From assembly GCA_964019335.1 (NCBI GenBank), contig OZ025669.1:372001-436000 (forward strand): a DNA stretch of 64,000 bases, in the 5' to 3' direction. The notes under the pieces are model-generated. The model saw only the letters and a list, made by a program, of their open reading frames with translations, had not been told where the DNA came from and made no database searches. This DNA comes from Diplonema japonicum. Its lineage: Eukaryota > Protista > Euglenozoa: Diplonemea. Positions 15,404 to 22,804 of the stretch are shown here, in pieces. Each line of letters begins with the position of its first letter. Position 1 is the first letter of the stretch. The position numbers and the translations under genes are program-made.

Positions 15404-15647
15404 GAATCCGGAAAGCCAGAGAGAACCAGGCCCTCTTCTTTGGGAAAAGAAAAAAAAGGGGGGGCGGAAGGAGAGGTTAAAGAAGAAACATGGTTTCCTT
15501 TGTTTTTTTTTTTTTTTTTCCCTTTTTCTTTTTTCCCCCTTTTGTCATCTTTCTTTGTACCGCAACTGAGCAAAGTAAATAATAAAAATAAAAAAAAAAG
15601 GTCGTCGTTTTTTTCTCTTTTTTTTTTCTTTTTTTTTTTAAAACCCA

Positions 15648-18600
15648 TCAACAGCTGATGATGCAGTCCCAGCAAGCTGTTCCAGACTGCAGCACCTCTT
15701 CGACACAAATTTCACTGTAAGTGACTCCATCTAGAGAGCCTTCAAGCGTGATATATTCGGGACAGTGCTGTAATAGATTTCGTTTTTTTTTTTTTTTTTT
15801 TTAGGATTTTCTTTTGTCAAACCTCTTTCTGCGGATAGCTCCTAACAACTACAGTGCAAGCTTCTGTGACCCCGTCCATCCTGTACTCTAGCCAGGCTGA
15901 GTCGCCTGTATTCGGGGCAGCATGCCAGCTCCCGGCTGGCCCCACACTTGACCCTGCTTCATGCGCATCTTCGCTTGGCGAACTGGCAGCCTTAGTTGGG
16001 TCAACAGCCAGGTTTGCACCTGAAGCCGAGAACACCAATAGTTGCCGCACCCTCCAGTTACAAGACTGTGAATGGCGTAGTTAAACATTATGTGAAATAT
16101 ATATATAAAAAAAAAAAACATACCTCCAGCAGCCCTTTGGGCTTCACACGCAGAGCCTTGTAAGCGGGTTTAGGTGTACCAAGCAGAGGGTGGCCTGTAA
16201 AAAAAAAAAAAAAAGAAGTAATAGAAGCCACCCACGAACATACATGCTATCAAGGCAGCAAGCGTGACGACAGCTCTTGCTGCTCGCTCCGAGTTGGGTC
16301 CTGGAGGGGTCGTCCATGACAGTTGGGAAGAAGAGATGCCAACGGAGGACAGCTTCGCCACCCCGTTAGTAAGAGTGGCTTGGTCTCCGAAGAAACTGAG
16401 GTTCCATTTCTGCGGATCTGACGCACAAGGCGTTGCAAGCAGAGAGTTGAACCTGCGTAAGGCGACGCTGCTCACAGCGCTCCCACGGGCTACAGGGTCC
16501 GAGCACAGCACACGGTCGATCTGTGTCTTCAGCAACGACACCAACTGCAGCTGGTCCCTGTTGGTCGTCTCTCTTGTTTTGTTGAGTTGTTCGATCTTCG
16601 CGATAAGCGCTGCCTCTTGGTTGGTGACGGCCACTCTCGCCCGCTCCCCCCACGACTCGACTTGCTTAATGGCGATCTGTGATTCTACGGAGCCTATGTC
16701 ATCACTCTGCTCCAGCAGATCAGCAGCTTTTGAGAGTATCTCGGCCCTGTCATTCAGCCTGTCGATCACCTCACCCGCCTCCACCGTCTCCTTGTCAAGG
16801 GACTGCGTCAGGAGACTCTTTACCACATGGTTCTTGAATCTGCCCCTCCTGTGCAGCTGCGTGCTGCATCCTGTGCACATTGTAACCATGCATTGTTCGC
16901 ACTCCGTCTCAGCGGGCTTGTCCTCACAGTGGTCACACAAAGGCACTTTGATGACACCACTGGGGAGCGACTCTATCCCGTCAGTCAGCGTCGTTGCAAC
17001 CCCGCATTGCGGGCATACAAATGATTTTGAAGGCTCGCCAAACGCCCACCCGGAGGTCGCTCTCAGGAGGGAGTGCATCTTTGTGGTGAACTGGTGCGCT
17101 TGTTCTGCACATGGGAAACACAGACAATGGCCACAGTCGAGTTTTCGAGAGTCTTTCGGCGGCCCCAAGCATGCTGGGCACGTGGCAATCGTGCATTGCG
17201 GGTCGTCTTGTTGCATTGTGAGAATGGCTCCCTGCAGAGCAGTGTGCTCTAGCAGTGTGTTCAGAGAGGGTCGGTTTTTATTGATGCACAGCGAGACGAA
17301 GCCCCTCCACGTGAAGGACAGGTCGCCGAGCGTTGCAGGTTCCCTGCCTGATATCTTTTCATGTATGATGTTCTCGATCTTCATGGCACCGAACTCCCTG
17401 AAGGGCATCCTGCCTGAGAGGATGTTGAGCATGATCATCCCGATGCCGTATATGTCGGACTCCTTGCTGCAGCCGTCTTCAAAAACCTCAGGAGCAAGGA
17501 TGGCCTCAGGACGCATGCCGTTTGCGGGGAGGATGAACTCTTTTGTCTCCATCGCACTCCAAGCTGCCCTGACGATCAGAGCTGAACAAACGTCTACTTT
17601 TATCTTGCTGAGATCGATGAGATAGACGTGGTGCGAGTGCAGCTGACCGTGCACTGAGTTGTGCCCATGGAAATAGGTGACGGCTTGGATGAGCTGGCAG
17701 GCTACTCGTTGGGCGTCACCGCCGCCAAGGGCCCCGGTTGTCGCGACATATTTCGCAAGCGACCCGCCTGACTTCGACTCTGTCACCCATGATATCGTCT
17801 TTTTCCCGTCTTCCCAAAGCCCTTTGCAGGACAGAATGTAATGATGCGATAGGGCGAATATAGACTCGCGTATCTGATCGGTGAGGATCGGGGTGCTGTA
17901 TTCATGCACGTCGACTTCATACTCGTGGAGCGCAACAGAGGTGTCACCTTCCTTGGCGGTGGCGAGATACACTGTGAGACGCCCTGACTGCATCATGACC
18001 CCGTGTTTCTCATACCTCCCAAGCTCTTGCGTGTATTTTTTCGCGAGTTTGCTCCGCCATTCCTCGTCGGCGGAGGGAGCCCCAGCTGTTGCCATACACG
18101 GGAAATCCCAGTCGGATGTTTCAGTCTCACGTGCATCACCCATGTGGCCATTTACCCCTCCCCCGCTGTTTCCATTGGTTGCTACAAGGCTGTGGTTTGC
18201 CATATGATTTCTAGGAACTTCCTTCGCTACCAGCTCCGGTACGCTGAGCTCGACCATCTTCATGCGAACGTAAGCTTGGGCAGAGAGGTGCATGTCCCGT
18301 CCGAAGCCGGCGAATATAGGGTGTTTGAGAAGCTCGTCCGCGGTGGGGCGGGTCTTAGGGTCTTTTTTCAAGCATTTCTTAACGAAATCGTGAAAGTCAG
18401 CAGAAAACTTCTTCGCCTTAACCGGCGAGAGGCCCTTCATAGTGGGCGGCTCTCCACGCAGAACGAGGGAGAAGACCTTCACAGGTTTGTGTTTATGGTG
18501 AGGCGGCTTACCGAACGCGCATTCAAGCGCAGTAATGCCCAACGACCAGATATCAGATGCTGATTGATAACCACCTTGAGACAAGGCTTCGGGTGCCATC

Positions 18601-19127
18601 CAGCACGGCGACCCTGCAAAGGTTTGCCCTTTAGTTATACTAGCATCGGGTACGGATATGCCGAAGTCGGAGAGACGGATGTCGCCATTTCGAGATACTA
18701 GTAAATTGGCGCATTTTAGGTCACGGTGTACAGACCCGATTGAGTGAAAATATCGTAGGCCTTCCAATGCCTGCTGGAGGATCGCACATATAAATGTTTC
18801 GTCGGAGATGCCATCGGGGTACACGGAGTTTATGACATCGAGGATGCTGCCGTGAGGGTGGTACTGTAGAACAAGCCAGAGACCGTTCCCGCAGAGGAAG
18901 CTGCCCTTCATGCGGAGGACATTGGCGTGGCAGCTTTTTCGCATCATTGTTGCCTCGTGTGTAAAGTGTTCCATGCTCATTTCGTTATCTAAATTTATCA
19001 CCTTCACGGCAACTTCTTCGTCTAACGGTACACATCTTGCTCTGTACACCACACTGCTTGACCCTTCACCCACCACACCCAACAGCTCATACTGCGCTGG
19101 GTCCCTTGGATACGCCAAACTCATCAT
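15648..19127 (-). CDS. OSR1/SPAK(FRAY)-type STE20 kinase + WNK/NRBP-like pseudokinase + RING + B-box + coiled coil + F5/8C-like domain (4 exons)
   Basis: Start MMSLAYP 19127. Intact VAVK/HRDLK/DFG/APE kinase, then a degenerate second kinase, a C3HC4 RING and a B-box. Introns 16195-16243, 16066-16123 and 15768-15822 extend the track ORF in frame to TGA at 15648 (AWLEYRM..CPEYITLEGSLDGVTY). Confidence 0.85.
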
Positions 19128-19681
19128 TTTCCTTTCGTCAGGAAGGGGGATGGTGCCACCCCTCACCAACCTCTTTTTCTTTTTTTGTTTCTTTTTCTTT
19201 TTCTTTTTTTTTCCCCTCCCCCTCCGACCCTTTTTTTTTTGGTGTTTTTCTTTTTTTTCTTTTTGCTTGAAAAAGAGAGAAAGCAATAGAAAGTTGTAAA
19301 ATTGATAAATTTCCGGGGGGGGGGGGGGGGGGGGGGTGCTCACTGTGTAAGTGTCAAAAAAGAAGAATCGAGGCAAAGCTTAGGTTGGCTTTAACTTCTT
19401 ACTTTGCACATACAACCTTTTGTTTGAGGTATAGGACAAGAGTGGGTCACAAAAAAAATGGTGATGAACAACGCCCAATAATAAAAAGGTTTTCCCGAGA
19501 AAACTCATTTTCATACATAGGGAAAGGGAGGGAAGCCAAAAAAGAAAGGGAGAAAAAGCCAAGAAAAAATAAATACAGCAAAATTTTTCAGCAAGGGGAG
19601 AGGGGGGGGGGGGGGGGGAAGCAAAGGTAAAAAAAAAAGAATAAAAAAAAATACCTGCGGAAGTAAAGTCCTTACTCAGTT

Positions 19682-19804: not shown

Positions 19805-22183
19805 TCAACGGAAAGCGGAGAACGCCTCTCGGCAAAGGTGCTGTTTAGCACTCAAAAGGTTGATGGCATGGACAACACAAGGGTCACAAGTGTGCGAGGC
19901 GATCCGAGAGTAGTCCTTCGCGAAAAACGCGTTCGAGTAAGCCTCAGACCAGTCCCAAGGAACGGACTTCTGAATCTCCTTCGTGTCGTTCCAGTACGTG
20001 ATGTTGGAAATAATTGACTCAGACCGCACTTCATAAACGGGAAAACGTTCTTCAACCCCTACGGACTTAACCAACCACATATCAACCGGACGTAAAACGC
20101 ACTGAAGCGAAGGTATACAAGATGCTGCATCAGGATGACCAGGCACAGCTGAGTACAGACAGAATGTCCCAAGCTCCTGCGCTGCTGTACACAACGCCAT
20201 GCACAACCGGACATTGGTTCCTATAACTGTAACGAATTTCTGTTCAGGGCTTCCTACAGCACCATGCCACACAGACCCACAGCTCAAGCCGACGAAGAAC
20301 TCTGTCGCAAGGTCTAACCGTGTACCTAGAGAGTATCCAAAGAGAAGCCCTGTGAACCTGAAGGAATTCTCCACGTGCGCTAAACACATTTTCGCTGTAT
20401 TCCACCCAGCATACACGGCACTGCCCAGCACCGTTATCACAACACCGTCCGTTCTCTCCAAACAGGTGAGGACCCTGCTCACGCTTTGGTTCAAAACAAC
20501 ACCGACATCCTCGTGCGACGGGTACACCTTTGCCTCTACACACGCCACTACCGATCTTGTTACAACATCCAAACAGCTTCTTGTGCTGTTCTGGCATGTG
20601 CGTACTGATGAGAATGTTGCGATGCTGCTTGCAGTTATCGAATCGAGCGGGTTGTCCTTCACTTCGGTGAACCTTCTTTGCATTACCTTGGATTTGACGA
20701 ATTCGCATCTCTTTGAAAGGCTTTCGGGGACAAGAAGGTTGACGACAATATCGTGTGAAAAGCCTTTAAGCTGCACGGCACCCAAACCAACGACAGCGGG
20801 GGTCATGATTTTATCAGGGCTGTTTAGGTACAGCGGGAGAAGATCGTTCGCCAACGCCATTGACCCGCCGATGGCAACCGCTTCCAACCGTGCAGCTAGG
20901 TTGACGGTTGTTCCGAAGTAGTCGCTTCGCTGAGTGGTTTCGTTCATCTCGATATCGACTTTGCCGTAATGTGCGCCTGCTCTGATGCGGACTCCATTCC
21001 ATAAACCGTTAGGGTCTGTGGCTGAGTTCGGGAAGTGTAAGAGGTTATCCGGCCATGGACAAGTGAGAAGCATCTCTTGTATCTTCAACCCGAAGTTGAC
21101 GGCTTGGACTAACTTCTCGAAGGATATCATAAAAGCGTCGCCGATTGTCTTCACCTCGTACCCGTCATAGAAATCCATGCATGTCCGTACGCTTTCATTG
21201 TGCAGACGCAGCCCGATACGCATGGCGTCGGGCTCCGCGTTCCAAAGCTGTGTAGAGCCTTGGATGTCGGTGAAGAGTATGGCAACCTTCTCACAAGTTG
21301 ATCCGGGTGCTTGACTAAGAGTGGTTTCCATCACCGTGTCGTTTCGCTCGTTGAAAAGCGCGTCTGGTAGAAACGGGCGGTACATTCGAAGGTTCAGTAG
21401 AAGTTGGTGGAATGTTGAGTGCAGCTCTACAGGGAGGCCTGTTTCCTTTAAAGACGATTCAGCTTCTTCGAGATTGAAGAGGGCGAGGCTGCTTGCGATC
21501 GCGTTGCTTGTTGCGATGGTGTTCTGCATGATTCGCTTCTCATGAGCCACCTTCACGGCGAAGCTCTTCGTGATGACAAAGTCAGCCCCGAAGACTATTA
21601 CACTGTAGATAAACGTCGCGATGCCCTCTGAGACTGCCGTCCCGCAAGGTGGGTACAAACAGTTGCAACGTTCCTTGAAGCTTGAGTAGTCAGAGGAGCT
21701 GGCAAAGACATCAAAAAGTCCGAATCTTGAAATTGTTTCAAACATCACAATCAGCATCCATATGACCGTCAATACCATCACCGTTACTGCAGTTCGTGAC
21801 TGTGCCTGACAGATAAGGAGGATGTCTAAAATTAAAATAACGTATGGCCAGTCACGGGACTTGCCTTTCCTAGCTGAGTCCAGATCAGCCATGATCACAA
21901 TCAGCATCAGCACCATAGAGCAGACAAACAACACCCTCTGCGATACGTTTTTAAACACCAACAGCCACAGCAACAGTGCTATCCCGCCAACCAGCACCAC
22001 GCAAGAGGTCCCTGTCATCCATATATTCTCATCTATGGCGTAAAGAACCAACGCCACCGTGCCCCCCATCACCATTGCTAGCGCTAGTACCAATAGCATT
22101 TCCTTCCTTCTTTTTTGTTTGTCGCTGTCGTCCTTTTTCACCACCCACCGCAGTAGCTCGCTGGGCAGCCTGCGGACACGCAT
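19805..22183 (-). CDS. Multi-pass membrane class III adenylate cyclase with degenerate second cyclase domain
   Basis: Likely start MRVRRLP 22183; about 5-6 hydrophobic helices. FTDIQGST, YEVKTIGDAF and DYFGTTVNLAARLE are intact; the C-terminal cyclase-like repeat lacks the Asp/Asn/Arg residues. Confidence 0.85.
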   Translation of the reverse strand: MRVRRLPSELLRWVVKKDDSDKQKRRKEMLLVLALAMVMGGTVALVLYAIDENIWMTGTSCVVLVGGIALLLWLLVFKNVSQRVLFVCSMVLMLIVIMADLDSARKGKSRDWPYVILILDILLICQAQSRTAVTVMVLTVIWMLIVMFETISRFGLFDVFASSSDYSSFKERCNCLYPPCGTAVSEGIATFIYSVIVFGADFVITKSFAVKVAHEKRIMQNTIATSNAIASSLALFNLEEAESSLKETGLPVELHSTFHQLLLNLRMYRPFLPDALFNERNDTVMETTLSQAPGSTCEKVAILFTDIQGSTQLWNAEPDAMRIGLRLHNESVRTCMDFYDGYEVKTIGDAFMISFEKLVQAVNFGLKIQEMLLTCPWPDNLLHFPNSATDPNGLWNGVRIRAGAHYGKVDIEMNETTQRSDYFGTTVNLAARLEAVAIGGSMALANDLLPLYLNSPDKIMTPAVVGLGAVQLKGFSHDIVVNLLVPESLSKRCEFVKSKVMQRRFTEVKDNPLDSITASSIATFSSVRTCQNSTRSCLDVVTRSVVACVEAKVYPSHEDVGVVLNQSVSRVLTCLERTDGVVITVLGSAVYAGWNTAKMCLAHVENSFRFTGLLFGYSLGTRLDLATEFFVGLSCGSVWHGAVGSPEQKFVTVIGTNVRLCMALCTAAQELGTFCLYSAVPGHPDAASCIPSLQCVLRPVDMWLVKSVGVEERFPVYEVRSESIISNITYWNDTKEIQKSVPWDWSEAYSNAFFAKDYSRIASHTCDPCVVHAINLLSAKQHLCREAFSAFR

Positions 22184-22804
22184 CGATTTCAAGTCTTTTT
22201 TTTTTTTGTTTTGCTTTTTTTTTTTTTTTTTTTTTCCCTCCTTTGAAAAAAAAAAAGAAAGGGAAGAAGAACGGGGGGGTAACTTTCTTTTCTTCTCTTG
22301 GAAACACCCTCCCCCCCCGCCCCTGTAAGGAGGCTCAAAAAAAAAAAAAAAAAAAAAAAAAAAAACAAATGGGGCTTTGATTGCAACACTAGGTGGCGTT
22401 AAGCGTGCAATGAAGCACGAACTACCTACTTGATTACAGGGGGCGCTCCTCGGGCGCTCCCCGAGCAGTAGCTTCTTCTGCGTTCCGCGTCGTGTCCTTA
22501 ATGCGTGCGGTGTGCTCAACCCTAGCCAGGGCGTCCCGGGTAACCAAGATTCTGCGCTCGTGCAGTTTGCTGCCTGTTCGTCACCCTGAGCATCTGCGTT
22601 ACGTTCTTCCACTCGGGCGCTACCGGTGATGACCGACGAGGAGGTCAACAGCGAACAACACATCTGATGTACTTCTTATATTTTCATGTTATCCCCACCA
22701 CCTATAACAAAAGAAAATAAAACGGTTTTTTTCTTCTCTCTTTTTTCTTTCCTTCATCCGACCCCTGGGAGGAAGACACAAGTTATGATTTCTAAAAAAC
22801 CCTT

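Follow-up and report, generated by a model that had tools for sequence, protein, structure and literature searches.

In a 64,000-nucleotide stretch of the Diplonema japonicum genome (positions 372,001 to 436,000 of OZ025669.1, assembly GCA_964019335.1; hereafter the window, contig C22 within a 62.5-Mb assembly) lies a gene for a multidomain protein that combines, by sequence and predicted fold, an intact FRAY (OSR1/SPAK-type) STE20 kinase with a WNK-derived pseudokinase, a RING, a B-box, a long helix and a C-terminal discoidin-like domain. The gene gives rise to one spliced, expressed mRNA that runs across all four of its exons. The architecture is real and conserved, apparently undescribed so far, and built from known domains. 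We propose, with moderate confidence, that the FRAY kinase would be regulated by the dead WNK domain to which it is fused, and that it might thereby be coupled to TRIM-like ubiquitination of targets bound by the discoidin-like domain.

This long form, with kinase pair, RING, B-box, helix and discoidin-like domain, is found in D. japonicum, Flectonema neradi, an ENA assembly (protein P0003), Lacrimia lanifica, Artemidia motanka and Namystynia karyoxenos. A short form that consists of the kinase pair only is present in D. japonicum, Diplonema papillatum (annotated ‘fray2’), Lacrimia, Namystynia and a JGI metagenome, and a two-domain protein of the same type occurs in the euglenids Eutreptiella and Euglena. 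The gene models are already in public protein sets, one relative bearing the name ‘fray2’ in NCBI. In full-text literature searches that paired WNK with the names Diplonema, Euglena or Euglenozoa, no description of the fusion came up. To a first-pass annotation of the window, made from the letters alone, the architecture was unfamiliar, and a wide existing annotation of it, which would have spoken against that reading, was not encountered.

Kinase pair, ligase-like part and discoidin-like domain

The Pfam model Pkinase matches the whole protein with 248 bits, in two stretches. In the first, kinase 1, the catalytic set is present (beta-3 K42, alpha-C E58, HRD at 134-136 within HRDLK, DFG at 154-156 and APE at 178-180) and invariant among 14 family sequences. 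Its T-loop Thr, T169 (equivalent to OSR1 T185), is embedded in QTFAGSPCWMAPE, and the motif around it, TFAGSPCWMAPE, also occurs in OSR1, BLUS1 and the euglenid relatives. A phmmer search of the PDB with kinase 1 gave 222 bits to OSR1 and 215 to SPAK, against 198 to STK25 and 194 to MST3. When an AlphaFold2 (AF2) model of residues 1-645, with a mean predicted local distance difference test score (pLDDT) of 80.4, was submitted to Foldseek, SPAK/OSR1 ranked at the top with 38-40% identity. In a maximum-likelihood (ML) tree, kinase 1 fell into a clade with OSR1 and BLUS1 with 99/98 support (ultrafast bootstrap/SH-aLRT, here and below) and YSK outside, in a limited sampling of STE20 kinases. By these sequence, fold and tree comparisons, kinase 1 is an intact FRAY-type STE20 kinase; it does not group outside FRAY, and the OSR1/SPAK/BLUS1 character ascribed to it at the outset is borne out. 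The SDWDF motif in the linker behind it has counterparts in WDFP of the euglenid fusions and AWNFN of plant BLUS1. Pfam found no match to the CCT domain (OSR1_C, PF12202) in the window protein.

Kinase 2 is, by family profiles and phylogeny, WNK-derived, as the first-pass annotation had suggested from an alignment by eye. When kinase 2 of the D. japonicum short paralogue was compared with the PDB, WNK3 (82.8 bits) and WNK1 (75.6) made up the first 15 entries and RAF1 followed with 64, and a two-sequence profile of both D. japonicum kinase 2 domains gave whole-domain scores of 100.9 for WNK3 and 97 for WNK1 against 79 for RAF1. A hidden Markov model (HMM) of the family was built from ten diplonemid domains and scored per domain, since the whole-protein ranking of the representative search was inflated by multi-kinase proteins. 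The Lacrimia short form, the Namystynia long form and the euglenid proteins reached about 160-214 bits with this model, stand-alone kinases (WNKs) 117-146 bits, and other kinase domains about 100 or less; the stand-alone matches include an Anaeramoeba ‘wnk kinase’, a Gonapodya kinase with OSR1_C and the D. japonicum WNK. The ML tree comprised 67 domains, NRBP sequences not among them, and was computed under LG+C20+F+G4. It separated the kinase 2 family plus WNK from all other domains with 100/99 support, and resolved the kinase 2 family (99/97) and the WNK clade (97/90) as sisters. Word-indexed protein searches returned little: for window kinase 2, close orthologues and one unrelated ENA protein (39 bits) only, and for D. 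papillatum kinase 2, two diplonemid-type proteins and 23 weak kinase matches, of which the named ones were bacterial. This sparseness is due to the word index and not to an absence of relatives.

The losses reported earlier for kinase 2, namely of the WNK beta-2 Lys, of HRD (replaced by HGQ) and of DFG/DLG, are all seen in the alignment. In the window protein, the beta-2 position holds Leu (GRLTVY) and not the WNK Lys, the beta-3 position holds His (VALHE), which leaves no catalytic Lys, and KVDVC stands where IGDLG would be expected. Across the family, aligned with WNKs, the HRD Asp and the DLG/DFG Asp are missing in every member and the beta-3 His is present in all. With neither a catalytic Lys nor the HRD or DFG Asp, kinase 2 is, judged from its sequence, a pseudokinase and not a WNK. 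The erosion is graded: euglenid members have a WNK-type glycine loop (GxGxYK), HRN at the HRD position and the beta-2 Lys; diplonemid short forms have a diverged glycine loop and HRR (ILR in NamyShort, CLK in JGIShort) and have lost the beta-2 Lys; and long forms, with the loop likewise diverged and the Lys lost, have HGQ, HQQ, HRH or HHH. AF2 predicts the kinase 2 fold with confidence (pLDDT mostly 80-95), and seven non-catalytic residues are invariant (H401, W438, E439, T449, D558, Y560 and R619). The retained fold and these invariant residues point to a conserved dead kinase, not to a decaying sequence.

The kinase pair is not peculiar to the window gene; it is older, and it also exists without the ligase part. 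The short paralogue in the same genome (G000:C57:82895-84697, L001/L002) encodes 607 aa with a FRAY kinase and a WNK-derived pseudokinase (HRR for HRD), has no ligase part, and is the orthologue of D. papillatum ‘fray2’ (P0008). The tree topologies of kinase 1 and kinase 2 are congruent, with euglenids sister to diplonemids and with long-form and short-form groups within the diplonemids. The occurrence of the pair in the short paralogue, other diplonemids and euglenids indicates that the fusion is old and that the RING, B-box and discoidin-like parts were added in diplonemids. On the simplest reading of these trees, a single fusion before the euglenid-diplonemid split would have been followed by a duplication in diplonemids and then by the gain, in one copy, of the ligase-like and discoidin-like parts. 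This history covers euglenids and diplonemids.

The D. japonicum genome also encodes a separate canonical WNK of about 375 aa (G000:C86:79695-80426, L010, ORF 1408-2598 +) with GAFKKVY, VAWNE, HRDLK and IGDFG. Against human WNK3 and WNK1 it reaches 250 bits, and its only Pfam domain is the kinase, with no CCT-like domain. With an active WNK encoded elsewhere and kinase 2 dead in every family member, the window protein would not be a self-contained cascade, and the initial suggestion that it may act as a self-contained osmo-signalling unit is doubtful. After the two fusions, the next STE20 genes are MST1/2-like (291 bits) and YSK-like (220 bits), which leaves the two fusions as the only FRAY-type kinases found in the genome. 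Genes for SLC12 cation-chloride cotransporters and a single one for MO25 are present as well. About 7 kb separates the gene for the MST1/2-like STE20 kinase (G000:C65:118000-118851; 291 bits to human MST1) from the sole MO25 gene found (C65:125382-126431; 254 bits), and both are on the same strand.

Behind the kinase pair, the B-box that had been claimed in the first-pass annotation is supported by Pfam, and the C3HC4 RING and the coiled coil claimed with it are probable. The RING ligands (C650, C653, C665, H667, C670, C673, C705 and C708) and the B-box ligands (C731, C734, C743, C746, C751, C754, H759 and H767) are invariant in six orthologues, and AF2 places a single 92-residue helix after the B-box (pLDDT 71-78). 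When residues 640-961 were searched alone, Pfam matched ANCHR-like_BBOX with 28.5 bits (cut-off 27) and zf-B_box with 25.3 (cut-off 24.1); with the whole open reading frame (ORF) as query, both B-box models fell slightly below their cut-offs. The Foldseek list for the RING/B-box/helix model is weak throughout and consists mostly of TRIM28/KAP1, TRIM72, TRIM21, TRIM2 and TRIM25 together with B-boxes, with TRIM RBCC structures at E-values of 0.004-0.05.

Two further genes of the same genome combine related elements. A 417-aa protein (G000:C112:105599-106012, L015, ORF 1396-2730 +) has a RING, a B-box, a second B-box-like motif and a long helical region, and thus a TRIM-like tripartite order in a stand-alone diplonemid gene; its RING has a similar insert ahead of the last Cys pair. 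Another kinase/B-box combination is found at G000:C51:362802-363566 (L011, ORF 1348-2922 +), where a NEK-like kinase is followed by a C-terminal B-box-like zinc finger (weak Pfam match, E 0.016).

For the C-terminus, a discoidin/F5-8C-like domain had been predicted, and this prediction stands in part. The Pfam model F5_F8_type_C (PF00754, cut-off 28.2) matches the Flectonema orthologue (P0002) above the cut-off with 31.2 bits and stays below it in P0003 with 23.5, and it has no match in P0001, the transcript-derived D. japonicum protein, or in exons 2-4 of the window searched singly. ESM Atlas language-model features of 0.94 to F5_F8_type_C clusters provide a lead only. Together with the orthologue alignment, these results suggest a divergent domain that is discoidin-like, not a proven family member. 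A paralogous discoidin-like domain, with 29% identity to exon 3 and an F5_F8_type_C match at E 0.009, is encoded at G000:C50:134348-134566 (L019, ORF 1288-1959 -), where it lies in a single exon behind a long coiled-coil region.

Proposed mechanism and alternatives

In animals, the CCT domain of OSR1/SPAK is the docking site for WNK, which phosphorylates their T-loop. No RFxV motif is present in the long form, the short form or the C86 WNK, the three proteins checked, and a six-frame search of the D. japonicum assembly gave no match to OSR1_C (PF12202). The missing CCT match, the missing RFxV motifs and the fusion of a dead WNK to a FRAY kinase together suggest that the dead domain could be a built-in regulatory or docking partner of kinase 1, and that it might substitute for the CCT/RFxV docking that links WNK and OSR1/SPAK in animals. 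It could act on kinase 1 by allosteric contact, or it might recruit a free, active WNK, which would then phosphorylate Thr169 of the D. japonicum long form. The RING, the B-box and the coiled coil would dimerise and, following the TRIM plan, ubiquitinate targets held by the discoidin-like domain, so that kinase signalling and ubiquitination might be coupled within one polypeptide. E3 ligase activity of this part is inferred by analogy with TRIM proteins. A role in osmotic or chloride signalling, again by analogy, is plausible, because the genome encodes SLC12 transporters and MO25.

Several observations weigh against this proposal. The mechanism is a proposal drawn from sequence and models. 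In the long forms of Flectonema, the ENA assembly, Lacrimia and Artemidia, the T-loop position holds Q, H or A instead of Thr, so that phosphorylation of the WNK type cannot generally activate the long form. The AF2 model of both kinases shows no confident arrangement of kinase 1 relative to kinase 2 (predicted template modelling score, pTM, 0.50). As a single sequence, window kinase 2 is too diverged to show a WNK preference in the PDB (PDK1 41 bits, RAD53 39, MST3 36, WNK3 34), and its assignment rests on the family profiles and the tree. The absence of CCT depends on a short 63-position model searched in six frames in one assembly. On the ligase side, Pfam zf-C3HC4 covers the full model in segment 640-961 and reaches 20.7 bits, just below its cut-off of 21; AF2 confidence is 56-65 in the RING region and poor for the RING/B-box/helix model overall (pLDDT 58.5); and Foldseek found no match to that model below an E-value of 0.001.

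It is conceivable, if unlikely, that kinase 2 is a degenerate structural spacer, and that the protein is simply a STE20 kinase plus an E3 ligase whose WNK ancestry carries no functional information. The loss of all catalytic hallmarks would fit such a role, as would the missing WNK preference of the long-form domain alone, the T-loop Thr that is not conserved among long forms and the interdomain packing that AF2 does not place with confidence. A spacer would not, however, readily account for a kinase fold that is kept in every member from euglenids to hemistasiids, nor for the invariant non-catalytic residues, a pattern that argues for a selected non-catalytic function.

A second alternative concerns residues 949-967, an Ala/Val/Leu-rich segment that exceeds every other 19-mer in hydrophobicity in each of the six long-form orthologues (Kyte-Doolittle 1.5-2.2) and that could be a short membrane anchor or a helix packed on the coiled coil. 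If it were a single transmembrane helix, the protein would be receptor-like and membrane-anchored: the kinases and the RING/B-box would be cytosolic, and the discoidin-like domain, outside or in a lumen, would sense a ligand and relay to the kinase/ligase part. Such a protein would be a reversed analogue of the discoidin-domain receptor kinases, or of the membrane-anchored TRIM13 and TRIM59. An anchor is favoured by the position of the segment, with the helix on one side and the discoidin-like domain on the other, by its flanks, with Arg residues before and Pro residues after it, and by the usually extracellular location of F5/8 type C domains. On the other side, its uncharged core of only 11-15 residues is short for a bilayer, the protein has no signal peptide and about 950 residues ahead of the segment, and AF2 confidence at the segment is below 50. 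In solved TRIM structures, moreover, a helix that follows the coiled coil folds back against it, and this would also explain a conserved hydrophobic helix. We regard a receptor-like topology as improbable.

Far less credible is an origin of kinase 2 as a tandem duplicate of the STE20 kinase 1, or from another non-WNK kinase, with the WNK resemblance acquired by convergence. Kinase 2 does align to kinase 1 at 25% identity (tblastn), and the PDB matches of the window domain include STE20 kinases. The margins of the profiles and of the HMM are nonetheless on the WNK side, the tree sets kinase 2 and WNK apart together, and euglenid members still have a Lys at beta-2, as WNKs do, and none at beta-3. 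An approximately unbiased (AU) test, for which the STE20 rival was named after the tblastn alignment of the two kinases but also after the first tree, rejected the joining of kinase 2 to STE20 (log-likelihood difference 38, p-AU 0.003). 

Gene structure and expression

The coding region occupies 15648..19127 on the minus strand, from an ATG at 19127 to a TGA at 15650-15648, and comprises four exons with 1105 codons plus TGA (Table 1); it matches exactly the stretch delimited in the first-pass annotation. The plain minus-strand ORF, which likewise opens at 19127, stops at 16170, and its final 24 codons are intron read-through. The three 3' introns reported as missed by the ORF track are real and are removed in two spliced sequences. 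One is P0001 (EukProt, EP01064), translated from a Trinity transcript of Diplonema japonicum, a protein of 1056 aa that begins at the internal Met 50 and that we used as the spliced product. In tblastn it falls into four blocks on the window, with residues 1-913 on 18980-16242 (exon 1) 100% identical and the short blocks at the exon junctions 89-99% identical. The other is a 3461-nt contig of the public run X7, in which 15649-15767, 15823-16065, 16124-16192 and 16243-19169 are contiguous in the contig's own coordinates. X7 is possibly the same data set as the EukProt transcriptome, and the two supports are not necessarily independent. Separate mRNAs, which would have refuted the first-pass reading, are not what these data show: a single mRNA spans all parts. 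Contigs of the runs X5 and X6 retain introns, which identifies X5/X6 as DNA or unspliced RNA.

Table 1. Position, extent and basis of the features encoded by the gene (window coordinates)
Feature	Positions	Strand	Description	Basis
Kinase 1	18312..19091	-	residues 13-272; FRAY/OSR1-SPAK-type STE20 kinase	Pfam, PDB phmmer, tree, Foldseek
SDWDF motif	18102..18116	-	residues 338-342; disordered linker of ~50 residues; W340 invariant in family	alignments
Kinase 2	17196..18065	-	residues ~355-644; GRLTVY, VALHE, HGQ, no DLG	profiles, tree, alignment, AF2
C3HC4 RING	17001..17180	-	residues 650-709; conserved 31-residue insert between C6 and C7	ligands, Pfam
B-box, type 1 spacing	16812..16946	-	residues 728-772	Pfam, ligands
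Long single helix, presumed coiled coil	16503..16778	-	residues 784-875	AF2
Conserved hydrophobic segment	16178..16283	-	residues 949-967; Ala/Val/Leu-rich; spans intron 1	Kyte-Doolittle
Discoidin-like (F5/8 type C, galactose-binding-like) domain	15651..16162	-	residues ~973-1105, exons 2-4	orthologue Pfam, alignment
Exon 1	16244..19127	-	961 codons + 1 nt; both kinase domains, RING, B-box, coiled coil	junction from sequence
Intron 1	16195..16243	-	49 nt, GTATGT..ACAG	absent from P0001 and X7 contig, retained in X5/X6 contigs
Exon 2	16124..16194	-	71 nt	sequence, P0001 match, X7 contig
Intron 2	16066..16123	-	58 nt, GTATGT..ACAG	X7 joint 16065/16124 skips 58 (CT..AC); also P0001
Exon 3	15823..16065	-	81 codons; core of discoidin-like domain	sequence, P0001 match, X7 contig
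Intron 3	15768..15822	-	55 nt, GTTTGA..ACAG	sequence, P0001 match, X7 contig
Exon 4	15648..15767	-	39 codons + TGA	sequence, P0001 match, X7 contig

That the gene model is an artefact, with at least two adjacent genes or a chimeric assembly taken as one, might be suspected from the plain ORF, which terminates at 16170 upstream of the discoidin-like part, but it is the least credible alternative of all, given that both kinases, the RING, the B-box and the helix lie within one uninterrupted frame, that the four exons are joined in the transcript-derived protein and the spliced contig, and that collinear proteins of 1110-1282 aa exist in five other species.

An intron-less ORF of the kinetoplastid kind was the first suspicion for this gene and was ruled out by the GT..AG introns and the transcript match. 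A spliced-leader site at 19169, where contigs of X5, X6 and X7 share an end, was also considered; we make no claim on the 5' end of the mRNA, because a purine-rich low-complexity tract just upstream (19176-19269, coding strand) breaks assemblies. Long tracts that are homopolymeric or rich in purines, among them 25 consecutive C at 19310-19334, flank the gene (window 15470-15650 and 19170-19345), and the contigs of all three runs break at 19169 and likewise at 15649, so that the true mRNA ends cannot be read from the contigs. Run X1, from a different coded organism, has short contigs over window 16298-19112 in which about 1-3% of positions differ, which suggests a closely related strain or species with the same gene. 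The neighbouring 952-aa ORF (window 19805-22663, minus strand) contains several hydrophobic helices, followed by ILFTDIQGST and KTIGDAFM motifs, and, on the evidence of its translation alone, resembles a membrane-bound class III adenylate/guanylate cyclase.

Significance and comparison with known systems

Animals depend centrally on signalling from WNK to OSR1/SPAK for the control of ions and volume. A FRAY/WNK fusion that has been kept from euglenids to diplonemids provides independent genomic evidence for a very old functional link between the two kinase families. A more far-reaching interpretation, which we raise only tentatively and consider possible rather than probable, is that of a Rosetta-stone fusion: the WNK-OSR1/SPAK partnership would predate the split of Euglenozoa from animals and plants, the CCT/RFxV docking would have been replaced by a fused dead WNK that, in cis, either activates in the manner of NRBP1 or provides a landing pad for a free WNK, and the long form, which would couple this module to a TRIM-like E3 ligase with a discoidin-like domain for target binding, would be the first kinase-TRIM hybrid and a tripartite protein outside animals. 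The fusion also offers a natural model, in a single chain, for studying the control of a FRAY kinase by a dead WNK domain, in organisms without a CCT-domain match. The salt and volume signalling of diplonemids is of ecological interest as well, since they rank among the most abundant heterotrophic protists of the sea. Regulation of WNK-OSR1/SPAK signalling by a pseudokinase, NRBP1, has been recognised only recently (PMC12266122). The tripartite motif has been described as exclusive to metazoans (PMC2533329), and the RING/B-box/coiled-coil order in the window gene and in the stand-alone C112 gene bears on this view of an animal invention.

Among known proteins, OSR1 (OXSR1), SPAK (STK39), Drosophila Fray and plant BLUS1 resemble kinase 1 most: SPAK/OSR1, at 38-40% identity, are the best matches by sequence and fold, and the T-loop TF(V/A)G(T/S)PCWMAPE with its Thr is shared, as is the W-x-F motif after the kinase domain. 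Unlike OSR1/SPAK, the fusion protein has no CCT (OSR1_C), a WNK-derived pseudokinase stands in that place, and ligase-like and discoidin-like parts are added. The D. papillatum ‘Serine/threonine-protein kinase fray2’ (P0008) and the C57 paralogue contain a homologous and collinear module of kinase 1 and pseudo-WNK, but they stop behind kinase 2 and lack the RING, the B-box, the helix and the discoidin-like domain. To WNK1-4 and the plant and protist WNKs, the kinase 2 family is related as a sister group that likewise has no beta-3 Lys; it shares the stretches WE.G...VTE and (V/I)D(V/I)Y..G, and its euglenid members keep the beta-2 Lys. It differs from them in that diplonemid members have lost the beta-2 Lys, that HGQ stands in place of HRD in the window protein (HRR or HRN in relatives), and that there is neither DLG/DFG nor a CCT-like domain.

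The likeness to TRIM/RBCC proteins such as TRIM28/KAP1, TRIM25 and TRIM72 lies in the predicted order of RING, B-box, long helix and a variable C-terminal domain that binds targets. The window protein differs in that its only B-box has type 1 spacing, its RING contains an unusual, conserved insert of 31 residues, two kinase domains lie N-terminal to the RING/B-box/helix part, and its source is a diplonemid. Judged from the sequences, either homology of the whole module to TRIM or convergent assembly could account for the likeness.

For the proposed regulation by a dead kinase, the WNK-related pseudokinase NRBP1, which binds the WNK pathway and switches it on in animals (PMC12266122), offers a conceptual parallel. 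No NRBP occurred among the PDB matches listed. NRBP1/NRBP2 are dead WNK relatives that work with the WNK-SPAK/OSR1 axis, and the first-pass annotation had also remarked on HG(Q/N) in place of HRD; NRBP1 is, in contrast, a separate protein that has its own CCT domain and acts with TSC22D adaptors, whereas the window pseudokinase is covalently fused to the FRAY kinase.

Kinases fused to E3 ligases are known elsewhere, in Arabidopsis KEG (RING plus kinase) and in the plant U-box kinases, and a pseudokinase-kinase tandem is known from the JH2-JH1 pair of JAK. The window protein resembles the former in joining a kinase to a RING-type ligase and the latter in what may be control of a live kinase domain by a dead one in cis, and it differs from all of them in its kinase families, its domain order and its evolutionary origin.

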